The position numbers were made by a program, and so were the translations under genes. From Fonticula alba ATCC 38817 (Eukaryota; Protista; Nucleariida), in the NCBI GenBank assembly GCA_000388065.2, contig KB932202.1: a stretch of DNA of 23,868 bases; one strand, written 5' to 3'. The notes below the pieces were generated by a model. The model was not told where the DNA came from. It worked only from the letters and a program-made list of their open reading frames with translations, and ran no database searches. Shown piece by piece: positions 2,921 through 20,594 of this stretch. How positions within the stretch are numbered: the first letter of the stretch is position 1; the number at the start of each line of letters is the position of its first letter.

Positions 2921-4037
2921 GCCCGGCCCGGTCCTCCTCCCCCCCCCCCTCCTCCCCTGCGCGGCGGCGACCCCGACGAGAACGCGAGGCGACACTTGCC
3001 ATATTTCATGTGCGTCAGGGAAAAGAGTGTGACATCACCCCTCCCCCGCTCCTCCTGAGGTTGGGACGAAACCCTCTCTCTGGGGGAGAGGAGTGGCGAG
3101 CCGGGGCCGGGGGGCTGCAGGGGGGGGGGGAGGGGGGGAGGCTGCACATGTTGTGCGCGTGTGCGCGTGCGCGTGTGTCCTCTCCCTCGCCCCCTGCTTC
3201 AACCCCCCCTCCCTCCTCCCCCTCCTCTGTCGCTGTCGAGGGTAGGCGAGCGCTGGAGCCGCGTCCCTCCTGCCACCCTTTCCTCCATCCCCCCGTTGCG
3301 GACCGGCCCCCTCTCATGCCCTGCGGACCGGCATGTGTGCTTCCATCCCCTCCCATCTCCTGCTCCTCCTCCTCCAAGTGGGGGCGATGCGTGGGGGTGG
3401 GGCGCGCTTCTGTCGTCCGTCCGCCGCATGCCAGCCACGCGCGCTCGCCTTTCCTCGACAGAGCATCTCCCTCCCCCTCCCTTTCTCCCTTCCTCTCTGT
3501 CTCTCTCTCTCCCCCCCTGTCCCTCCCTCTCGCCGTGTCGCCCTCATCCCGAGAGCCCCTCGTTGTTGTCCCCTTGTAGAATGCCTTCTTCCTCCCTTTC
3601 CCCTCCCCCCAATTCCACACCTAGAGCCCTTTCCAAGTTTTGTTTGTGTTCGCATTTTTCGACCGCGATCTCTGTCTCCGCACGAGCGGCCGAAGGGGGG
3701 GGTGGGGTGGGGGGGCGGGGGGGGGGACACGCGCGCGCACAGGGCAGTTCGTTCGGCAGCAAAGAAAAGAAAGGAGGTTCCATTGCCCCTCTGCCCTCCG
3801 TCCACGCTCTTGCCTCGCCCTGTCCCTCCCTCCCTCCCTCCCTCCCTCCCAACACACGGACGCGTGCACCTCGCACACGTCGTATACACACACACACACA
3901 CACATTGCAATGGCTGGTCTTCGCGGAAAACAGGGGAAAGGAAAAAAGGGCAGCGAGCGGCGCAAGCTACTCTCTCCCTCCCTCTCTCTCTCTCTCTCTC
4001 ACACACACATGCAGCGGAGGCACTCACGCGCCCCAGG

Positions 4038-5913
4038 TCACTGAGCCGGGCCCGGACGCGGCACGGGCTGCCGGCTGATGCGCAGCTGGCTGGTCAGAGC
4101 ACCCAGCGACTGCGTCGGCAGCACGCAGTCCACCTTGCTGCGGTTGAGCATGAAGGCCGGGGCCACCCAGTCGCCGCACGGGCATTGGTGGCCGATCCAG
4201 GAGAAGCCCCCGAGCTTGGTCTGGCACTTGGCATTCGGGCAGGCGATCTTGCCCTGCATGGCCGACGGATCGCCGGTCACATCCAGCATCCACTCCATGG
4301 GCTCCACGAAGAAGGAGCTACAGAGCGACCCGCCGAAGGGGCGCAGGGCCCGGGCCAGCGGGGATTCCGGCCCGGCGTGCGTCACCGGCGTGGCCGACGC
4401 GGCCAGGTCCCCCTGGTGGCTGACCATCACCGAGTGCGAGTAGTCCGCCCGATAGGACCGGTGCGAGGCGAGGCCCTTGCGCAGCAGGCGCCCCGGAGCC
4501 GACGAATCGCCGGCCCCGGCCCCGGCATCGGCCCCCGTCCCGCCGGTCAGCGGCTCATGCGGCAGGATGTGGTCCGCGTCGGCCAGCGGCCGGCGGCATT
4601 GGCGGCACCGCAGCAGGAGCTTCTGATTGGACACGGCGCGCGTGGCCTGCGGGTCCTGGCCGTAGATCGGCTCGGCGGCCACGAAGTTGAAGTCCTGGCG
4701 CAGGGCCGCGATGTCGTACAGCCGCCGGCGCCGGTACACCGGGTTGTTCATGTCCAGCTTGAAGCCCATGTCGCGGAAATTCCGCAGCTGGGCAACCAAC
4801 TCCCCGGGGAGGCTGCCACGCGGGGAGGAGAGGGGGGGGGGGGGTGCATGTTGCCGGGGGACCGATGCACAGCAGGGGCAGGACGCGTGCGTGTGCGCGC
4901 GCGCGTGTGAGACAGGAAAAGCCGACCGTCAGTCCGTGAAAGTTCCCCTCCCCCACATGGCTGGCGCGGGCAGATGGCATGGGTACGCACAGGGCGCGTG
5001 GCTCCTTCTCCGCAAGGAAGGCCACCAGGCCGGGGAGGATGTCGATTGGGGTGCCATCTTCGGCCGGGGCCGGGGCATGGTCCTCGAGGATCGCGGCCAC
5101 CTCGTCCGCCGGGGCCTCGGCCAGGTCGCGGTACAGTGCCGCCGCGGCGAAGAAAGCCGCCACGCTGAGGGACAGGTCGCTGGACCAGGGACGAGGGCGA
5201 GGGGGGAAAGGGGGGGGGGGGGGCGGTTAGTGGCCACGACCAGGGGCGGGGGGCCTATTCGCGCCGGGATGCATGTGTGCACACATGTGCACGTGCGCGT
5301 GCGCCGGTACAGGCCGCGGGGCGATGTGCGAAGGGGGGCCCGGGGCGGGGAGACCCGCGGGCCGCGGGCAAGCAAGGCGCGCACCAGCACAGCAGCGTGG
5401 CATCGGCCAAGGCGCCGGGCTCCTGGTCGACCGGCCGCAGCAGGTCCAGCACCTGCGTGGCGAAGGGGACCAGGTACGGCCCGGCCGATTGGCTGTCCAG
5501 GGCGGCCGCGTCGTCGGACCACTCGCACGTCTGGCTGATGGGGGGGATCTCCACCGCGGTCACGCGAATGTCCTTCAGATTGGTGACGGCATCCAGCTCG
5601 GGCAGCGAGCCGTCCGGCCGGCGGCGGTCCGCCACCTCGGCAATCTCGCCCAGGTACACGATCTGCCGGATGGCATGCCGGTCCAGGCGGGCGCGCTGCT
5701 GCGAGGCGATGTAGCTATGTGTCGCCAGCGAGTGGAGGGCGGCGGGTGATGAGTGGCCAGTGGTGAGTGGCCAGCGGTGGGTGATCGGTGGCGGGTGATC
5801 AGTGGCAGGCAGCAAGTGGCAGGCAGCAAGTGGCAGGCAGCAAGGGCAGGTCGGGGGGGTGTGAGCAAAACGCACTCGCCAATGAAGAGAGTGTCGGTCA
5901 CCTTGAAGAACAT
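4038..5913 (-). CDS. YVH1: YVH1/DUSP12-like atypical dual-specificity phosphatase-fold protein with C-terminal zinc-binding domain, about 443 aa; catalytic motif degenerate. Exons 5913-5876, 5714-5385, 5179-4991, 4812-4038
   Basis: DUSP-like start MFFKVTDTLFIGDYIAS. C-terminus RCRQCRRPL...HEP...CSSFFVEPMEWM...GKIACPNAKCQTKLGGFSWIGHQCPCGDWVAPAFMLNRSKVD matches the Yvh1/DUSP12 zinc domain. Exons sum to 1332 nt, in frame, with GT-AG junctions. Confidence 0.9.
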
Positions 5914-6715
5914 GGTGATATCGTGTCGGAGGGAGTGGGTGGGGGGAGGGGGCTTGAGAGGCGGACAGGGGCCGGTGTCTTTCTCTCTTTCTCTGTGTCT
6001 GTGCGTTCCGTGCGTTCTGCGTGTGCGTGCGTGTGTGGTGTGCGGGGAGAGTCTGGCGCGCGGCCCCCCGGGTGCGCGGCCACGGACGAAGCCCGCCCAT
6101 AATCGTGCCCCGGGCGCATGTTTTTTTTGGTCGCCCGGATCGCATCTTGCCGGCACACACGCGGCGGGCAGGGGCTTCCCCTTGCGCCCCCCCCCCCCCT
6201 TCCCCTCCTTGGGGGGAGTCGCTGGGGGGACGGCGTCGGGCGAGGCGCGGCGATCTCCCGGGCCGCGCGCCGGGAGCATGGCCAGCAGGTCCGGCGGGAC
6301 CTTGAGTGCCAACCGGCCTCACATGCCACGGGAATGGCGTTCCGGGGATTCATGTGCCCCAGCCTCCCCACCTGGTCCCCCGCCCGGCCGCGGCGGTGGC
6401 GGCGGTGGCAGGGGNNNNNNNNNNNNNNNNNNNNNNNNNNNNNNNNNNNNNNNNNNNNNNNNNNNNNNNNNNNNNNNNNNNNNNNNNNNNNNNNNNNNNN
6501 NNNNNNNNNNNNNNNNNNNNNNNNNNNNNNNNNNNNNNNNNNNNNNNNNNNNNNCCCCCCCCCCCTCCTCCCTGCCCGCCAGTTTCGCTTTCACGCCATC
6601 TGCCCTGGGTCCCTCTTTGCCGGCTTGAGCCTCGCCTCCTCCTCCCCCCTCCCCCTCCCCCCTCCCACCGGCCGCCCGTCAGCGCCCGCCCGCCTCGGTT
6701 GACTCTTTCGGTCAG
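5914..6715. promoter_or_regulatory. Probable bidirectional promoter region between divergent YVH1-like (-) and NOG1 (+); contains a 140-nt gap
   Basis: Positional inference from head-to-head start codons at 5913 and 6874. No specific core promoter element is proven. Confidence 0.5.
6415..6554. other. Assembly gap (140 N)
   Basis: Run of N. Confidence 1.
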
Positions 6716-6844
6716 GTACTTCCGCGCTGCGGTGTCTTTCTCTCTCTCTCTCTCTCTCTCTCCCTCGCGGGGAGCCACCTTCCTTTGCTGCCGACCCTGA
6801 CGCCCTCCGCTCTCGTCCCTCCCCCGCGCCCCCTCGTCGCGCAG
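6716..6844 (+). other. Probable 5'-UTR intron of NOG1
   Basis: CAG|GTACTT donor at 6716, (CT)n tract, CTGAC branch site at 6797-6801, pyrimidine tract and GCAG acceptor at 6841-6844, ending 29 nt before the ATG at 6874. Confidence 0.65.
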
Positions 6845-6873
6845 TTCCCCGGCCCCCGCAGTCGCCCGCGAAG

Positions 6874-8003
6874 ATGTCCTACAACTTCAAGAAGATCCAG
6901 GTCGTCCCCTCCTCGACGGACTTTGTGGACATTGTCCTGTCGAAGACCCAGCGCAAGACGCCGACCGTCATCCACAAGGGCTACGCCATCTCGCGTATCC
7001 GTAACTTCTACATCCGCAAGTGCAAGTTCTCGCAGCAGACCTTCCACGACAAGCTGAGCCAGATCCTGGCGGACTTCCCCCAGCTGGACGTGCGTGCCGG
7101 TGCTCCTGCCCCTGCCGCGGTCTCGGTTTTTTTTTGCAAGTGCTGACCCGCTTTCTTGCTCGGCTGCCCTCCCCCTTCCTTTTCCCTCTCCCCCTTCCTT
7201 TTCCCCCTCCCCTTCTCCCCTTCTCCCCTTCTCCCCCTCGCTCCAATAGGATGTCCACCCGTTCTACGGCGACCTGATGAACGTCCTCTACGACCGTGAT
7301 CACTACAAGCTGGCCCTCGGTCAGATCAACGCCGCCCGCCAGCAGGTCGACAACATCGCCAAGGACTACCTGCGTCTGCTCAAGTATGGTGACTCGCTGT
7401 ACCGCTGTAAGCAGCTGAAGCGCGCTTGCCTGGGTCGGTGCGTTCTCCTGCCGGCCGGCCGACCGCCGCCCCGGGGGCGAGAGGGCCCCCCCCCCCTTTC
7501 CCCCTTCCTCGCCTCGCCGCGCTGCACCCCCTCCGCCCCCACGGCTCCTTCCTCACTCTCTCCCCGCCTTCCCCCCCCTCCCCCTCCTCCTCCCTGGCCC
7601 CAGGCCCCCGAGGACAAGGACGATCGCCGGCAGCTTCACAAGGCCGTGCGTGATGCCCTCCCCCGGCTGGAGACCTCTTTCGTCCGGCCCGGCGAGCGTG
7701 GGTATCCGGCTGCCCCGGTCGACTCGGCCGATGCCGCTCCTGCCCCGACCGACACCATGATCGCTGTGTCGGTGGCCAAGTTCGTGCAGGGCCAGCGGTC
7801 GCGTCGCTCGACCCGACGGGGTCGAGCGGTTGCTTACTGGCCGGCAGCCTCCTCCGGTCTGTATTGTTGTTATTTTTTTTGAGGCCGCACAATGAAGGAG
7901 GCCTCTCCAATGGATGGAGGGTGTGTCAGTTTCTCTTGGAGCCATCGGTGCCATTTGCGCCGGGCGGCGGCCGCAGCCGGAATGGCCCGTGCTTCCAAGC
8001 CCG

Positions 8004-8034
<31 letters not shown>

Positions 8035-9080
8035 ACTCGCAGCATGTGCACCCTCATGGCCCGGCTCAAGGACACCCTGGCCTACCTGGAGCAGGTCCGC
8101 CAGCATCTGGCCCGTCTGCCCTCCATCGACCCCAACACCCGTACCCTGCTGATCACCGGGTACCCGAACGTCGGGAAGTCCTCCTTCATGAACAAGGTCA
8201 CTCGCGCCGATGTGGAGGTCCAGCCGTACGCCTTCACCACCAAGTCCCTCTTCGTGGGCCACATGGACTATCGGTACCTGCGCTGGCAGGTGATCGACTC
8301 GCCGGGAATCCTGGACCACCCGCTGGAGGACCGGAACACCATCGAGATGCAGTCGATCACCGCGCTGGCCCATCTGCGCTGCTGTGTGCTCTTCTTCATC
8401 GACGTGTCGGAGGATTGCGGCTACACCCTGGCCCAGCAGGTGGCCCTGTTCCATTCGATCCGGCCGCTGTTCACCAACAAGCCGGTGGTGCTGGTCCTGT
8501 CCAAGCTGGACCTCATGCGCTATGAGCAGCTCAGCGACGAGGGCAAGGCCCAGATCCAGACCTGCCTCGATACCGGGGCCACCATGGTCGAGGCGTCCAC
8601 CCTGACCGAGGAGGGCGTCATGGATGTCAAGCAGACCGCCTGCGACAAGCTGCTGGCCATGCGCGTGGAGAACAAGCTCCGCAACAAGAAGGCCGAGGAC
8701 ATCACCTCGCGCCTGCACCTGGCCATGCCCACCAAGCGCGATGATGTCATCCGCATGCCCATCCGCCCGGAGGGGGAGATCGTCCCGTACGACCCGAAGG
8801 ACCCGAACCGCGTGCTGCTGGCCAAGGACTACGAGCGCATGGGCGGCGGCGCCGGTGTCTACAATGTGGACCTGCGCGCGGACTACCTGCTCAAGAACCC
8901 GGAGTGGAAGTACGACGCCATCCCCGAAATCTGGGACGGCAAGAACATCATCGACTTCGTGGACCCGGACATCGAGGAGAAGCTCCTGGCTCTCGAGCGC
9001 GAGGAGGAGGCCCTCGAGGCGGCCGGTTTCTACGACGAGGACGAGGAGATCGAGGTGCGTGTGGGGTCTGGCTGTTGGGT

Positions 9081-9146
<66 letters not shown>

Positions 9147-9885
9147 CCTGCGGTCTTTCCTTCTTTGTGTTTTTTTGCCCCGGCTGTGTGTCCCCCCCCC
9201 CGCGGCCGGGGAGGGGGGCTGGCGCGAGGCGCGTGCCCCCCGCGTACATCCGGCACTCGGCCGACCCTAACAGTCTCTCCCCCTCCCGCCCCCCTGTCTT
9301 CCCCGTGCACACCCACACCCACACCCACAGGACGAGGAGCTCACTGCCAAGCGCGAGCTCGCGGCCCAGATCCGCGCCAAGAAGGACGTCCTCAAGCAGC
9401 GCAACCACATCAAGGCCATGTCGCGCCGCAACAAGGCCCCCATGCCCCGGACGAAGACCGCCGTCTCGGCCACCGAGTTCATCTCCACCATGCGCGAGCT
9501 GGGCCTGGACATCACCGACGTCAATGGCGGCGAGCGGACCTCCCGCCGGGAGCGCTCCAAGCGCATGCGCGACGGCGAGGAGGGCGGCTCCGACGCCGAG
9601 ATGGCCGTCGACACCGACGGCCCGGCCGGCGGCCCGGCCAAGCGCTCCCGCTCCATGGTCCGCAGCGAGTCCCGCGCTCGCAGCCTTTCCATGCCGCGCG
9701 AGCCGTCGGCCATGGGTCTGCGCGACTCGCGCCAGGTCCTCCTGGCCGCCAACCAGATCAGCCAGTCCCAGCGCCGTCTCAAGACCGACGGTCGCCGCGG
9801 CGAGGCCGATCGCCACATCCCCACCAACATGCCGCGCCACATGTTCTCCGGCAAGCGCAAGCAGGGCACCAACGACCGCCGCTAA
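6874..9885 (+). CDS. NOG1: Nucleolar GTP-binding protein 1 (NOG1/GTPBP4), 60S biogenesis GTPase, about 656 aa. Exons 6874-7089, 7250-7437, 8043-9054, 9331-9885
   Basis: Diagnostic N-terminus [10 protein letters not shown]...[17 protein letters not shown]1 [10 protein letters not shown]2 [10 protein letters not shown]3 DSPG, NOGCT region [10 protein letters not shown]...[24 protein letters not shown]-terminal [17 protein letters not shown]. The conserved LGR|MCT junction joins 7437 to 8043. GTGCGT donors; total 1971 nt in frame. Confidence 0.97.
7604..7856 (+). other. Orphan coding exon resembling pseudouridine synthase PUS7 (TruD family, region just before the catalytic core), nested in NOG1 intron 2
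   Basis: Preceded by a pyrimidine tract and CAG (7601-7603), followed by a possible GTCTGT donor at 7857. Codons are GC3-rich like neighbouring exons. The translation [22 protein letters not shown]...MIAV...WPAASSG matches, from memory, the PUS7 pattern EDxKExRxxIHxAIKxxFPxLET...YIV...WPKSRG. The frame differs from NOG1. Confidence 0.7.
9085..9144. repeat. (GT)30 microsatellite in NOG1 intron 3
   Basis: Read directly from the sequence. Confidence 0.95.
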
Positions 9886-10568
9886 TAAGGGGGCGGGCGA
9901 GAAAGGCCCGCGCGGGTGGCTTGTGTCCCCCTTTCCTCCCCCCTCCCCCCCCTCTCTCTCCGTTTCTCCCGCGTTCCCCCCGGCCTCCGCCGCCGGCCCT
10001 CCTCCTCCTGGGCTCCGTGCCGATGTGTGTCGCTTTCTGGTGGCCGTGTGGCGGCCGTCTGGCTCGCCCGGTTGTTCATCGATCCATCGCCGGCGCCCGG
10101 GGGGAGGGGCGGCCGGCAGCGACTCCGGGGGGCGCCCCCGGGGCCTCGGGGTGGTGGTGGTGGAACGGCGGGGGACGACACACGCCATGTCCTTGTCCTG
10201 TCTGCCTCGCTCTGCCTGCGTGCTGGGTCGGCGCGGCGCGCCGCGCCGCTGGGGCCCTTCTCCTCCTGTGCATGCGGCACTGGCCTGTGTTTGGCCTGCG
10301 CGCGCCTGGGCGGGGGGAGAAGAGGGCCTGGCCACTACTCGTCCGGGCGGGCATCCGCCCACGGCCGAGACGCTGGCGCGTGTCTGTGCATGCTCTCTGT
10401 CTCTGTCTCCCTTTCCCCTTGCTTCTCCCTCCCTCCTGTGTCATTCTTTCATAGATCATTGTAATATTATATACCTTCCCCAAAGAGCGCCGTCCGAAGA
10501 GGGGGGCGGGGGTTGGGCAGGGGACCGGCACCGGGGGCCAGGGGGGGCGTCACGCCCGGGGGCCGAAG

Positions 10569-10806
10569 NNNNNNNNNNNNNNNNNNNNNNNNNNNNNNNN
10601 NNNNNNNNNNNNNNNNNNNNNNNNNNNNNNNNNNNNNNNNNNNNNNNNNNNNNNNNNNNNNNNNNNNNNNNNNNNNNNNNNNNNNNNNNNNNNNNNNNNN
10701 NNNNNNNNNNNNNNNNNNNNNNNNNNNNNNNNNNNNNNNNNNNNNNNNNNNNNNNNNNNNNNNNNNNNNNNNNNNNNNNNNNNNNNNNNNNNNNNNNNNN
10801 NNNNNN
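10569..10806. other. Assembly gap (238 N)
   Basis: Run of N. Confidence 1.
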
Positions 10807-10834
10807 CCCCCCCCCGCCGACCTGTCTGGCCGCC

Positions 10835-12196
10835 ATGCTTCGCACCACCCGCCAGCTGTCGATGGCGCGCGCGCCGTTCGCGCGCTGCCTTTCGAGCGCC
10901 TTCGAGGCGGTTCCCGCACAGGCATCCTGGTATGTGAGCCTGGCCCGGCGGCGCCAGCCGCCTGTTGCTCCTCGCCCTGCTCGCGGGATGCTGTTGACTG
11001 ACCCGTGTGGCCGCGCTCGAACCCGGCCACAGTATGATCATCGCGGCCCGGGCCCCGGCCAGCGAGACCCCCGCCCCGGAAGATGGCTTCCGGCTGCTGT
11101 TCCTCAAGCGCTCGGCCACCATGCGCTTCCAGCCGAAGTGCGTGTCCCTGCGGCCCGGTCCGCTCCTCGCTCGCCCTGCTTCCCCGCCGGCGCACGCCGC
11201 ATGATCTGAGCTGACCCGCCTGCTTGCGCCGCGTGCGGCAGCTTCCACGCTTTCCCCGGGGGCAAGGTCGACCCGACCGATGCCCTGCTGGCGCAGGCCC
11301 TTCGCGAGGCGGCCTTCCCCACGCTGGATGCCAGGTATGTTCGGCCGGGGGCGGGCCCCGTGAATCGCCAGGCCGCCCACTGACCCGTCGCGCCGCCCGC
11401 CTCCCCCCCCGCCCCCCCCCGCCACCCCCCCCCCCCCGCCCCCCCCCCCCCCCCCCCCCCCCCCGCCCCTCCCCCCCCCCCCCCCCCCCCGGGGCCGCCC
11501 AGGGGGAAAAAAGGGGCCAACCCGCTCGCCCCCCCCCCCCCCCAAATCCCCCCCCCCCCCGGGGGGGGCGCACCCCCCCCCTTTGGGGCCCCGCCCCCGG
11601 GCGCCCCGCCCCCCCCCCCCCCCCCCCCCCCCCCGCCCCCGCCCCTCTCCCCCCTCCCGCGACCTGGACCCCTGACGCATCCATCTGCCGCCCTGCTCGT
11701 GCCTCGCGTCTGGTGCCCCCCTCCCCCCTCGGTCCTCGCGCGCGCGCGCGCGCGCGCGGTCGACAGTGCGGCCGTCGATCGCTCGGCCAACTGGCACGCG
11801 GACATCGACGCGCGGGCCATCTTCCTGCGGGACCGGGCGCCCTCGCTGGATGCCCCACTGGGCCCGGACGCGATGCTCATCACCCGCGCCTGCCGGCCGC
11901 CCTTCTCCAACCGGGCCGAGCTGCCGGTCCTGGGGGATCTGCCGGCGGCGCGGGCCCCGCGGCCGGCCCCGGCCACCCGGACCACGGTCCTGCTGCCGGG
12001 CGACGCGGACTACCCGCGGCACCTGGCGGCCTTGCTGGCGGCGCAGGGGCCGGATGCGCGGGCACCGGCGCCGGACGCCGTGCCGGTGGCCGCCGCCACC
12101 CCCGGGGCCGCTCCCCGCCGCCGGCGCCTGGTGCGCTTCGACCTGGACGAGGAGGACCCGCCCGGCGCCGAGGCGCCCTTCCTGCTGCTGCGCTGA
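10835..12196 (+). CDS. Nudix hydrolase, NUDT19-like (acyl-CoA diphosphatase-type); model incomplete. Exons 10835-10929, 11033-11137, 11242-11334, probable missing exon(s) in 11400-11640, then 11767-12196
   Basis: The spliced peptide ASCMIIAAR...FRLLFLKRSATMRFQPNFHAFPGGKVDPTD fits the NUDT19-type N-terminal half. Donors are GTATGT, GTGCGT and GTATGT, with CTGAC branch sites. No RExxEExG half-box is visible. Confidence 0.7.
11400..11640. other. Low-quality poly-C/poly-G stretch, probably an assembly or sequencing artefact
   Basis: Almost pure irregular C and G homopolymers with scattered A/T runs and no codon structure. Confidence 0.7.
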
Positions 12197-20142: not shown

Positions 20143-20594
20143 TGCGGCGGCACACGACCGCGCCGCCCCCGGGGCCGACAGGGGGGAGAGACCACCGCCG
20201 CCTTGCGCGCGTTTGGCGATTCCAGAAGGGACGCGCCGGCGGGCGGGCGGCGCGCGCGGCCGGTGGCGTTACTCCGGCGGCGGCCCAAGAGGGAGGGGCG
20301 CGGGGCGAGCGCGGCGGGGAGCAAATTTAAATAAGTATAACGTGCAGCTGCGTTGGCGCATCGCGTGATCAGCGCGCGACCGGGCGGCTGGCCGCGCTCC
20401 GCCGCCCGGACGGCCTATCGCCCGTTCTTGGGGGCGGATTAATGGCCTTAACTGGACGGCACCGGCACGGGGGAGCACGCCCACAGCAAGGAGGGGGGGG
20501 CGGGGGGCGCGGAGCAGCACTTGCACGGAGGGGCACGCGAGGAACATGTGTGAGCAGTGTGTATATTGCGCGCGGGCGGCGGCCATCGCCCCCT

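Follow-up and report, generated by a model that had tools for sequence, protein, structure and literature searches.

A fragment of PUS7 in intron 2 of the Fonticula alba NOG1 gene: templated insertion or assembly chimera

In the Fonticula alba draft assembly GCA_000388065.2, the second intron of the NOG1 gene contains a block of DNA that reads as part of a different protein, PUS7. The question raised by this locus is whether the block is an exon at work, a stray copy of a piece of a gene, or something put together during sequencing and assembly. The window analyzed is a stretch of 23,868 nucleotides of scaffold KB932202.1 (a locus taken from the record of that scaffold, L002, is identical to the window across 9,012 bases).

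NOG1 is annotated as H696_01371 (P0124, 656 amino acids). Exact spliced alignment of this protein to the window places its exons on the + strand at 6874-7089 (exon 1), 7250-7437 (exon 2, which carries a match to Pfam NOG1_N), 8043-9054 (exon 3) and 9331-9885 (exon 4). The introns are 160, 605 and 276 nt long and all three start with GTGCGT. Intron 2 (7438-8042, + strand; GTGCGT...TCGCAG) is removed in the annotated model. None of the other seven introns defined in NOG1 and PUS7 is as long; they measure 98-276 nt. The initial annotation had given this intron the same boundaries and had called its 605 nt unusually long; it had also held NOG1 to be complete without the block, and the exons of P0124 do splice across intron 2 with the block skipped (the annotated protein runs from ACLGR directly into MCTLMARL, and the PUS7-like block is not part of it).

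Outside the block, intron 2 has a C-rich left flank at 7438-7559 (+ strand, 79% GC). The right flank, 7829-8004, is 59% GC and contains an AT-rich island (7853-7902) as well as the hexamer GTCTGT at 7857; a C30 tract on the + strand (8005-8034) follows, and is the pyrimidine tract ahead of the true acceptor at 8042. Searches of the window and of the PUS7 locus for a source of the two flanks returned low-complexity matches only. Native intron is one possible origin for the right flank, and insertion of a second piece another; folded as RNA, the flank gives no structure signal (z -0.4), and Rfam yields no match, and no sign of an intronic snoRNA, in 6600-9400.

Several features of introns and of base composition in this DNA can be recorded at this point. 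Homopolymer runs of at least 10 nt number 34 in 24 kb, and all are C or G (examples are the C runs at 7486-7496, 8005-8034 and 9192-9201, and the G runs at 4832-4844 and 5210-5223). The runs appear to take their strand from the gene, with C on the sense (+) strand of NOG1 and G at the neighboring gene, which is encoded on the minus strand (L002 165-2040, corresponding to window 4038-5913), and poly-C seems to act as an intronic or UTR pyrimidine tract. Branch-point-like CTGAC/CCGAC motifs lie far from the acceptor (by about 57 nt in intron 1 of PUS7 and some 110 nt in intron 1 of NOG1), and are followed by a long C/T-rich tract, which makes for an unusual intron layout (window 7090-7249 and 7438-8042; 10556-10710 of the PUS7 locus, L001); the segment 7203-7241 is one C/T-rich stretch of NOG1 intron 1. 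The eight donors comprise five GTGCGT, one GTGCAT and two GTATGT, so that C at +4 is common and not universal. AT-rich islands (40-nt GC of 0.42 or less) occur at just four places in the window, 3611-3669, 7853-7902, 10426-10494 and 20322-20362. The third of these is about 540 nt beyond the NOG1 stop codon and may mark a 3' end; the second, in NOG1 intron 2, is GT/T-rich (tgtattgttgttatttttttt) and might represent either another captured piece or a cryptic polyadenylation element. Two microsatellites accompany the gene, a (CT)n repeat directly upstream of the NOG1 start (6737-6762) and a (GT)n repeat within NOG1 intron 3 (about 9170-9215).

The identity of the block is secured by a single protein. 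By itself, its 84-residue translation makes a sub-threshold match to Pfam PUS7L_N (E 0.0016; 19 bits vs a cut-off of 27) and no match to PDB sequences (phmmer). A phmmer search of 1.84 billion representative proteins returns one strong match, P0001 (E 5.5e-37, 96% identity), with residues 1-76 of the block translation aligned to P0001 residues 186-261. P0001 is the PUS7 of F. alba itself, a protein of 711 amino acids with a full TruD domain (PF01142, E 1.1e-60) and the catalytic motif AGTKDKRGVT, matching human PUS7 (5kkp_A) at E 4e-92. The PUS7 identity proposed in the initial annotation is upheld by this match and by the DNA alignment described below, and the human PUS7 motif that it cited is real (it aligns with P0001 187-212 in the 5kkp_A alignment). 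It had also seen no other PUS7 motif in the window. In agreement, tblastn of P0001 on the window finds residues 185-249 and no further piece, the TruD catalytic part with its GTKDKR motif (located at L001 about 11080-11100) is not in the window by Pfam or tblastn, and the PUS7 motif AWPEDRP (P0001 266-272) is not found there. Set against the PUS7/TruD family (human PUS7, PDB 5KKP; Pfam PF01142 and PF23943), the block is alike in encoding F. alba PUS7 residues 186-255, among them a stretch that aligns with the human protein; it differs in that it holds 70 of 711 codons, all upstream of the TruD domain, and is without the GTKDKR motif, a start codon or a donor site. The block is a PUS7 fragment, and is neither a gene nor a functional member of the PUS7/TruD family, because it has neither the catalytic domain nor the exon boundaries of one.

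PUS7 is encoded on another scaffold of the same assembly, KB932208.1, as a gene of six exons that translates exactly to P0001, with no assembly gap in the relevant stretch. In this locus (L001), intron 1 ends at 10710 and exon 2 occupies 10711-11258 (548 nt). Alignment by blastn and MAFFT shows window 7560-7813 to be the counterpart of L001 10667-10920, at an identity of 252/254 bases and without a gap; low-complexity sequence aside, the 22.9-kb PUS7 locus has no similarity to the window beyond these 254 nt. The copy takes in the final 44 nt of PUS7 intron 1 (7560-7603, + strand, corresponding to L001 10667-10710), comprising its pyrimidine tract and CAG acceptor, together with the first 210 of the 548 nt of exon 2 (7604-7813, + strand), that is, 70 codons specifying P0001 residues 186-255. 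The exon-derived part matches the donor at all 210 positions. Mismatches occur at 7562 and 7584 only, both of them in the C-rich intron-derived part, and both change a base other than C into C within a C-rich tract.

These limits differ from the unit 7604-7856 delineated in the initial annotation: the homology begins 44 nt further upstream and ends 43 nt sooner. Homology breaks off sharply at 7813/7814, where there is no donor site; past the equivalent point PUS7 runs on as GGGRAGKRGLPAWPEDRPRY, and the window sequence is unrelated. Since it ends mid-exon without a donor, the copy is not an exon. The splice signals that had been credited to the block as its own are therefore of mixed standing. 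The pyrimidine tract and CAG acceptor are genuine, being the copied tail of PUS7 intron 1, and the GTCTGT donor lies outside the homology and drops out. The perceived likeness of WPAASSG to SWPKSRG was coincidental, as 7814-7856 is not derived from PUS7. Because the copy contains intron sequence, its template cannot have been mature mRNA and must have been either genomic DNA or unspliced RNA.

The two edges of the copy are of different kinds. The left edge is fuzzy, and can be placed anywhere in 7560-7563, within pyrimidine-rich sequence that is similar and not homologous between the two introns. Across the right breakpoint lies an inverted repeat (7805-7828), perfect over 10 bp and with a loop of 4 nt: CGCTCGACCC-gacg-GGGTCGAGCG, with arms at 7805-7814 and 7819-7828. 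In the left arm, nine bases belong to the PUS7 copy and form its end; the last base of that arm, together with the loop and the right arm (7814-7828, 15 nt), is new sequence with no counterpart at the PUS7 locus. About 45 kb of F. alba DNA contain four hairpins this good, and the chance that one should straddle a given breakpoint is therefore about 0.002. Treated as single-stranded DNA, the right-junction region folds with a z of -3.7, and none of 200 shuffles does as well. Neither a target-site duplication nor poly(A) nor notable terminal inverted repeats accompany the PUS7 piece, and its flanking direct repeats are low-complexity C-rich sequence only. Junctions of this make-up (no target-site duplication or poly(A), a fuzzy left edge, a 15-nt hairpin-forming segment at the right) are those expected of a templated insertion, and a donor that is both remote (KB932208.1 vs KB932202.1) and intact is likewise what such an insertion calls for.

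The copy brings a 3' splice site (7603/7604) into NOG1 intron 2. To judge by its sequence this site is potentially usable, and its use is the one possible effect of the patch. Splicing from 7437 to 7604 would, by computation, shift the frame and end NOG1 at a TGA at 7758 after 52 foreign residues. It is solely through the left flank, left unspliced, that the block shares the open frame of NOG1 exon 2 (ORF 7277-7882), and at about 70% GC open frames of this sort are common. With regard to RNA, sequencing runs of RNA type contain 0.48-0.53 of the words sampled from 7250-8250, and the share expected is 0.531 for spliced NOG1 exons plus PUS7 mRNA and 0.346 for NOG1 alone. Spliced NOG1 and PUS7 mRNA thus account for the RNA word share of 0.53 by themselves; no intron words are needed, which fits removal of the intron.

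Three rival explanations have to be weighed, and the one that assigns the block a job can be dealt with first. It takes the block for a working exon, whether of a scattered or trans-spliced PUS7 gene, of a second PUS7-like gene nested in NOG1, or of NOG1 itself as an alternative exon, and it would have in its favor that the block is open in the PUS7 frame, is preceded by a genuine, if copied, acceptor, and is in frame with the exon 2 ORF through the left flank. We consider it very improbable. The initial annotation had entertained an interleaved or trans-spliced gene with dispersed exons, and had suggested looking for a main locus lacking exactly this exon, with the proviso that an intact copy there would make the block a mere duplicated fragment. 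The main PUS7 locus on KB932208.1 is gap-free and has the exon intact within its six-exon gene, and the interleaved or trans-spliced reading is refuted by this intact copy: nothing is needed from a NOG1 intron. Against the exon in any of its forms stand also the end of PUS7 homology in mid-exon without a donor, the C at +3 of GTCTGT (unlike all eight donors seen), the lack of the TruD catalytic part in the window, the frameshift and stop at 7758 that a 7437 to 7604 splice would bring, the annotated NOG1 that leaves the block out, and the RNA word shares, explained as they are without intron words. A captured or duplicated exon had been suggested as well, and of this the duplication of a gene fragment survives; it is not a whole exon that was duplicated, the copy consisting of an intron tail and part of an exon. 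Mobile elements could in principle have moved such a fragment. Capture by a transposon of the Pack-MULE or Helitron type, or a LINE-mediated retrocopy, nevertheless seems to us distinctly unlikely: gene fragments spanning intron-exon junctions are known from transposons, and the right flank (7829-8004), for which the window and the PUS7 locus offer no source, contains a T8/A8 run, but the PUS7 piece is not adjoined by terminal inverted repeats, a target-site duplication or a poly(A) tail, there is no second copy within the window or the PUS7 locus, and the genome of F. alba, reported to be 0.36% repetitive (bioRxiv 10.64898/2026.06.24.734286), has few repeats to offer. As to a processed retrocopy or LINE-mediated (class 1) insertion in particular, this is rejected, the 44 nt of PUS7 intron 1 being retained and a 3' A-run and target-site duplication being absent.

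The remaining rival is of a different nature. It holds that the PUS7 fragment was put into the NOG1 intron in the course of library construction or assembly, by PCR template switching in C-rich DNA that is hard to sequence or by assembler patching, and we give such a chimera somewhat less than an even chance. The assembly is a fragmented draft, with four gaps in 24 kb; the left breakpoint lies within low-complexity sequence common to both loci; the exon part of the copy is 100% identical to its donor, and both mismatches are error-like, going into C within a C tract; and PCR template switching in vitro can give the same junction signatures. Reads bear on the matter to a small extent. Fourteen sequencing runs contain parts of window 7250-8250, and the word shares of DNA-type runs of the original sample (0.41-0.63) are barely above those of RNA-type runs, so that intron words may be under-represented; a 60-nt query of words spanning the right junction lists no run, weakly in favor of a chimera in that it sampled two words, and the same count of two limits what this junction test can say against an insertion. 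The missing junction words lean weakly to the side of an artefact, or of an allele lost from the contigs. A chimera, on the other hand, needs two independent false joins 254 nt apart in one contig, in a block that is at least 1 kb from the nearest assembly gap. The poly-C tracts flanking the block had been thought of as points of misassembly, but the breakpoints are elsewhere, near 7560-7563 on the left and at 7813/7814 on the right; no repeat that could mislead an assembler is present at the right join, and the 15 nt of new hairpin-forming sequence there is not something that an assembler can invent. Scanning the window outside 7203-7241 for Illumina and 454 adapters turned up chance 10-mers only, none of them in or near the block. 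The divergence of the copy from its donor at one or two bases speaks for a real insertion. Searches beyond the assembly add little on either side: ORFs 7277-7879 and 7864-9267 used as protein queries retrieve NOG1 of other species (at most 87% identity, none from a close relative) and the annotated F. alba protein, from a collection apparently without other F. alba contigs, and two metagenome scans, one for a pattern from the right flank and one for a pattern from NOG1 exon 3, gave no match.

We give an even chance to the best explanation, namely that some 254 nt of F. alba's own PUS7 were inserted by templated copying into NOG1 intron 2, where they form a recent and inert patch. The sequence of events would be as follows. 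A break or a stalled replication fork in the C-rich tract of the NOG1 intron would be repaired by a polymerase; a pyrimidine-rich 3' end would anneal within PUS7 intron 1, at the pyrimidine tract similar to it, and the polymerase would copy about 250 nt of PUS7. The end would then come off, snap back on itself for 10 nt (generating 7819-7828) and be rejoined. The route would be alternative end-joining or microhomology-mediated template switching, of the type represented by Pol theta and by class 2 templated sequence insertions, and the hairpin at the right edge, by analogy with these systems, reads as the snap-back mark of polymerase template switching. A variant of the templated insertion, to which we assign low probability, has PUS7 pre-mRNA or a splicing intermediate as the template. 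It is suggested by the start of the copy, 14-17 nt after the predicted branch point CTGAC. (For a cDNA of a lariat intermediate, the start would have to be at the predicted branch A, L001 10653, and not 14-17 nt past it; this candidate is kept as nothing beyond a low-probability variant.)

Two known systems provide the terms of comparison. Class 2 templated sequence insertions have a distant, intact donor, end-joining junctions and no target-site duplication or poly(A) (PMC5110952). The F. alba patch resembles these insertions (TSI or TSIP; Onozawa et al., reviewed in PMC5110952) in being short (tens to hundreds of bp) with a donor that is far away and intact, in having no target-site duplication or poly(A) and in the end-joining features of its junctions. 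It resembles them also in type of donor, since TSI donors are often transcribed regions, intronic sequence included. The class 2 insertions have been described in human cells and genomes, with an RNA intermediate and the LINE-1 reverse transcriptase invoked, whereas F. alba is a TE-poor protist, the template here is DNA or pre-mRNA, and the insertion is known from the assembly alone. In snap-back synthesis by Pol theta, or SD-MMEJ, a 3' end folds back and copies itself, leaving a short inverted repeat (PMC4912351, PMC5728401, PMC5068794). The likeness to this process is in the inverted repeat at the junction (10 bp with a 4-nt loop in the present case) and in entry by microhomology within a similar pyrimidine tract. 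The difference is one of scale and distance: typical templated insertions of Pol theta are of a few to a few tens of nt and use a nearby template, and here ~250 nt come from another scaffold. A 250-nt copy from another chromosome is nearer to MMBIR/FoSTeS or to fragment capture than to Pol theta insertions.

The patch is without function and makes no PUS7 product. A more consequential version of the event, which we regard as unlikely, is that template switching took place in vivo between the two C-rich intronic poly-pyrimidine tracts and that a cryptic 'poison exon' was newly born. Were this true, the unusually long poly-C intron tracts of Fonticula would be fragile sites that seed inter-chromosomal copying, and a genuine 3' splice site would have been placed in an intron of an essential ribosome-biogenesis gene.

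What can be taken from this locus is, for the most part, sober. The feature is ordinary whichever way it arose: if real, it adds one case to a known kind, and otherwise it is an artefact. A false lead is removed: Fonticula alba does not have an interleaved or trans-spliced PUS7 gene. For users of the reference assembly, NOG1 intron 2 is a spot that needs checking at the level of reads, and annotators should be aware that similarity searches will show a stray PUS7-like open frame in it. If the insertion is real, it would be a clean and very young templated break-repair insertion, complete with snap-back junction, in a TE-poor protist near the root of the fungi. It would also be a case of a ready-made splice acceptor carried into the intron of another gene, and as such of modest interest for the growth of introns and the birth of exons.
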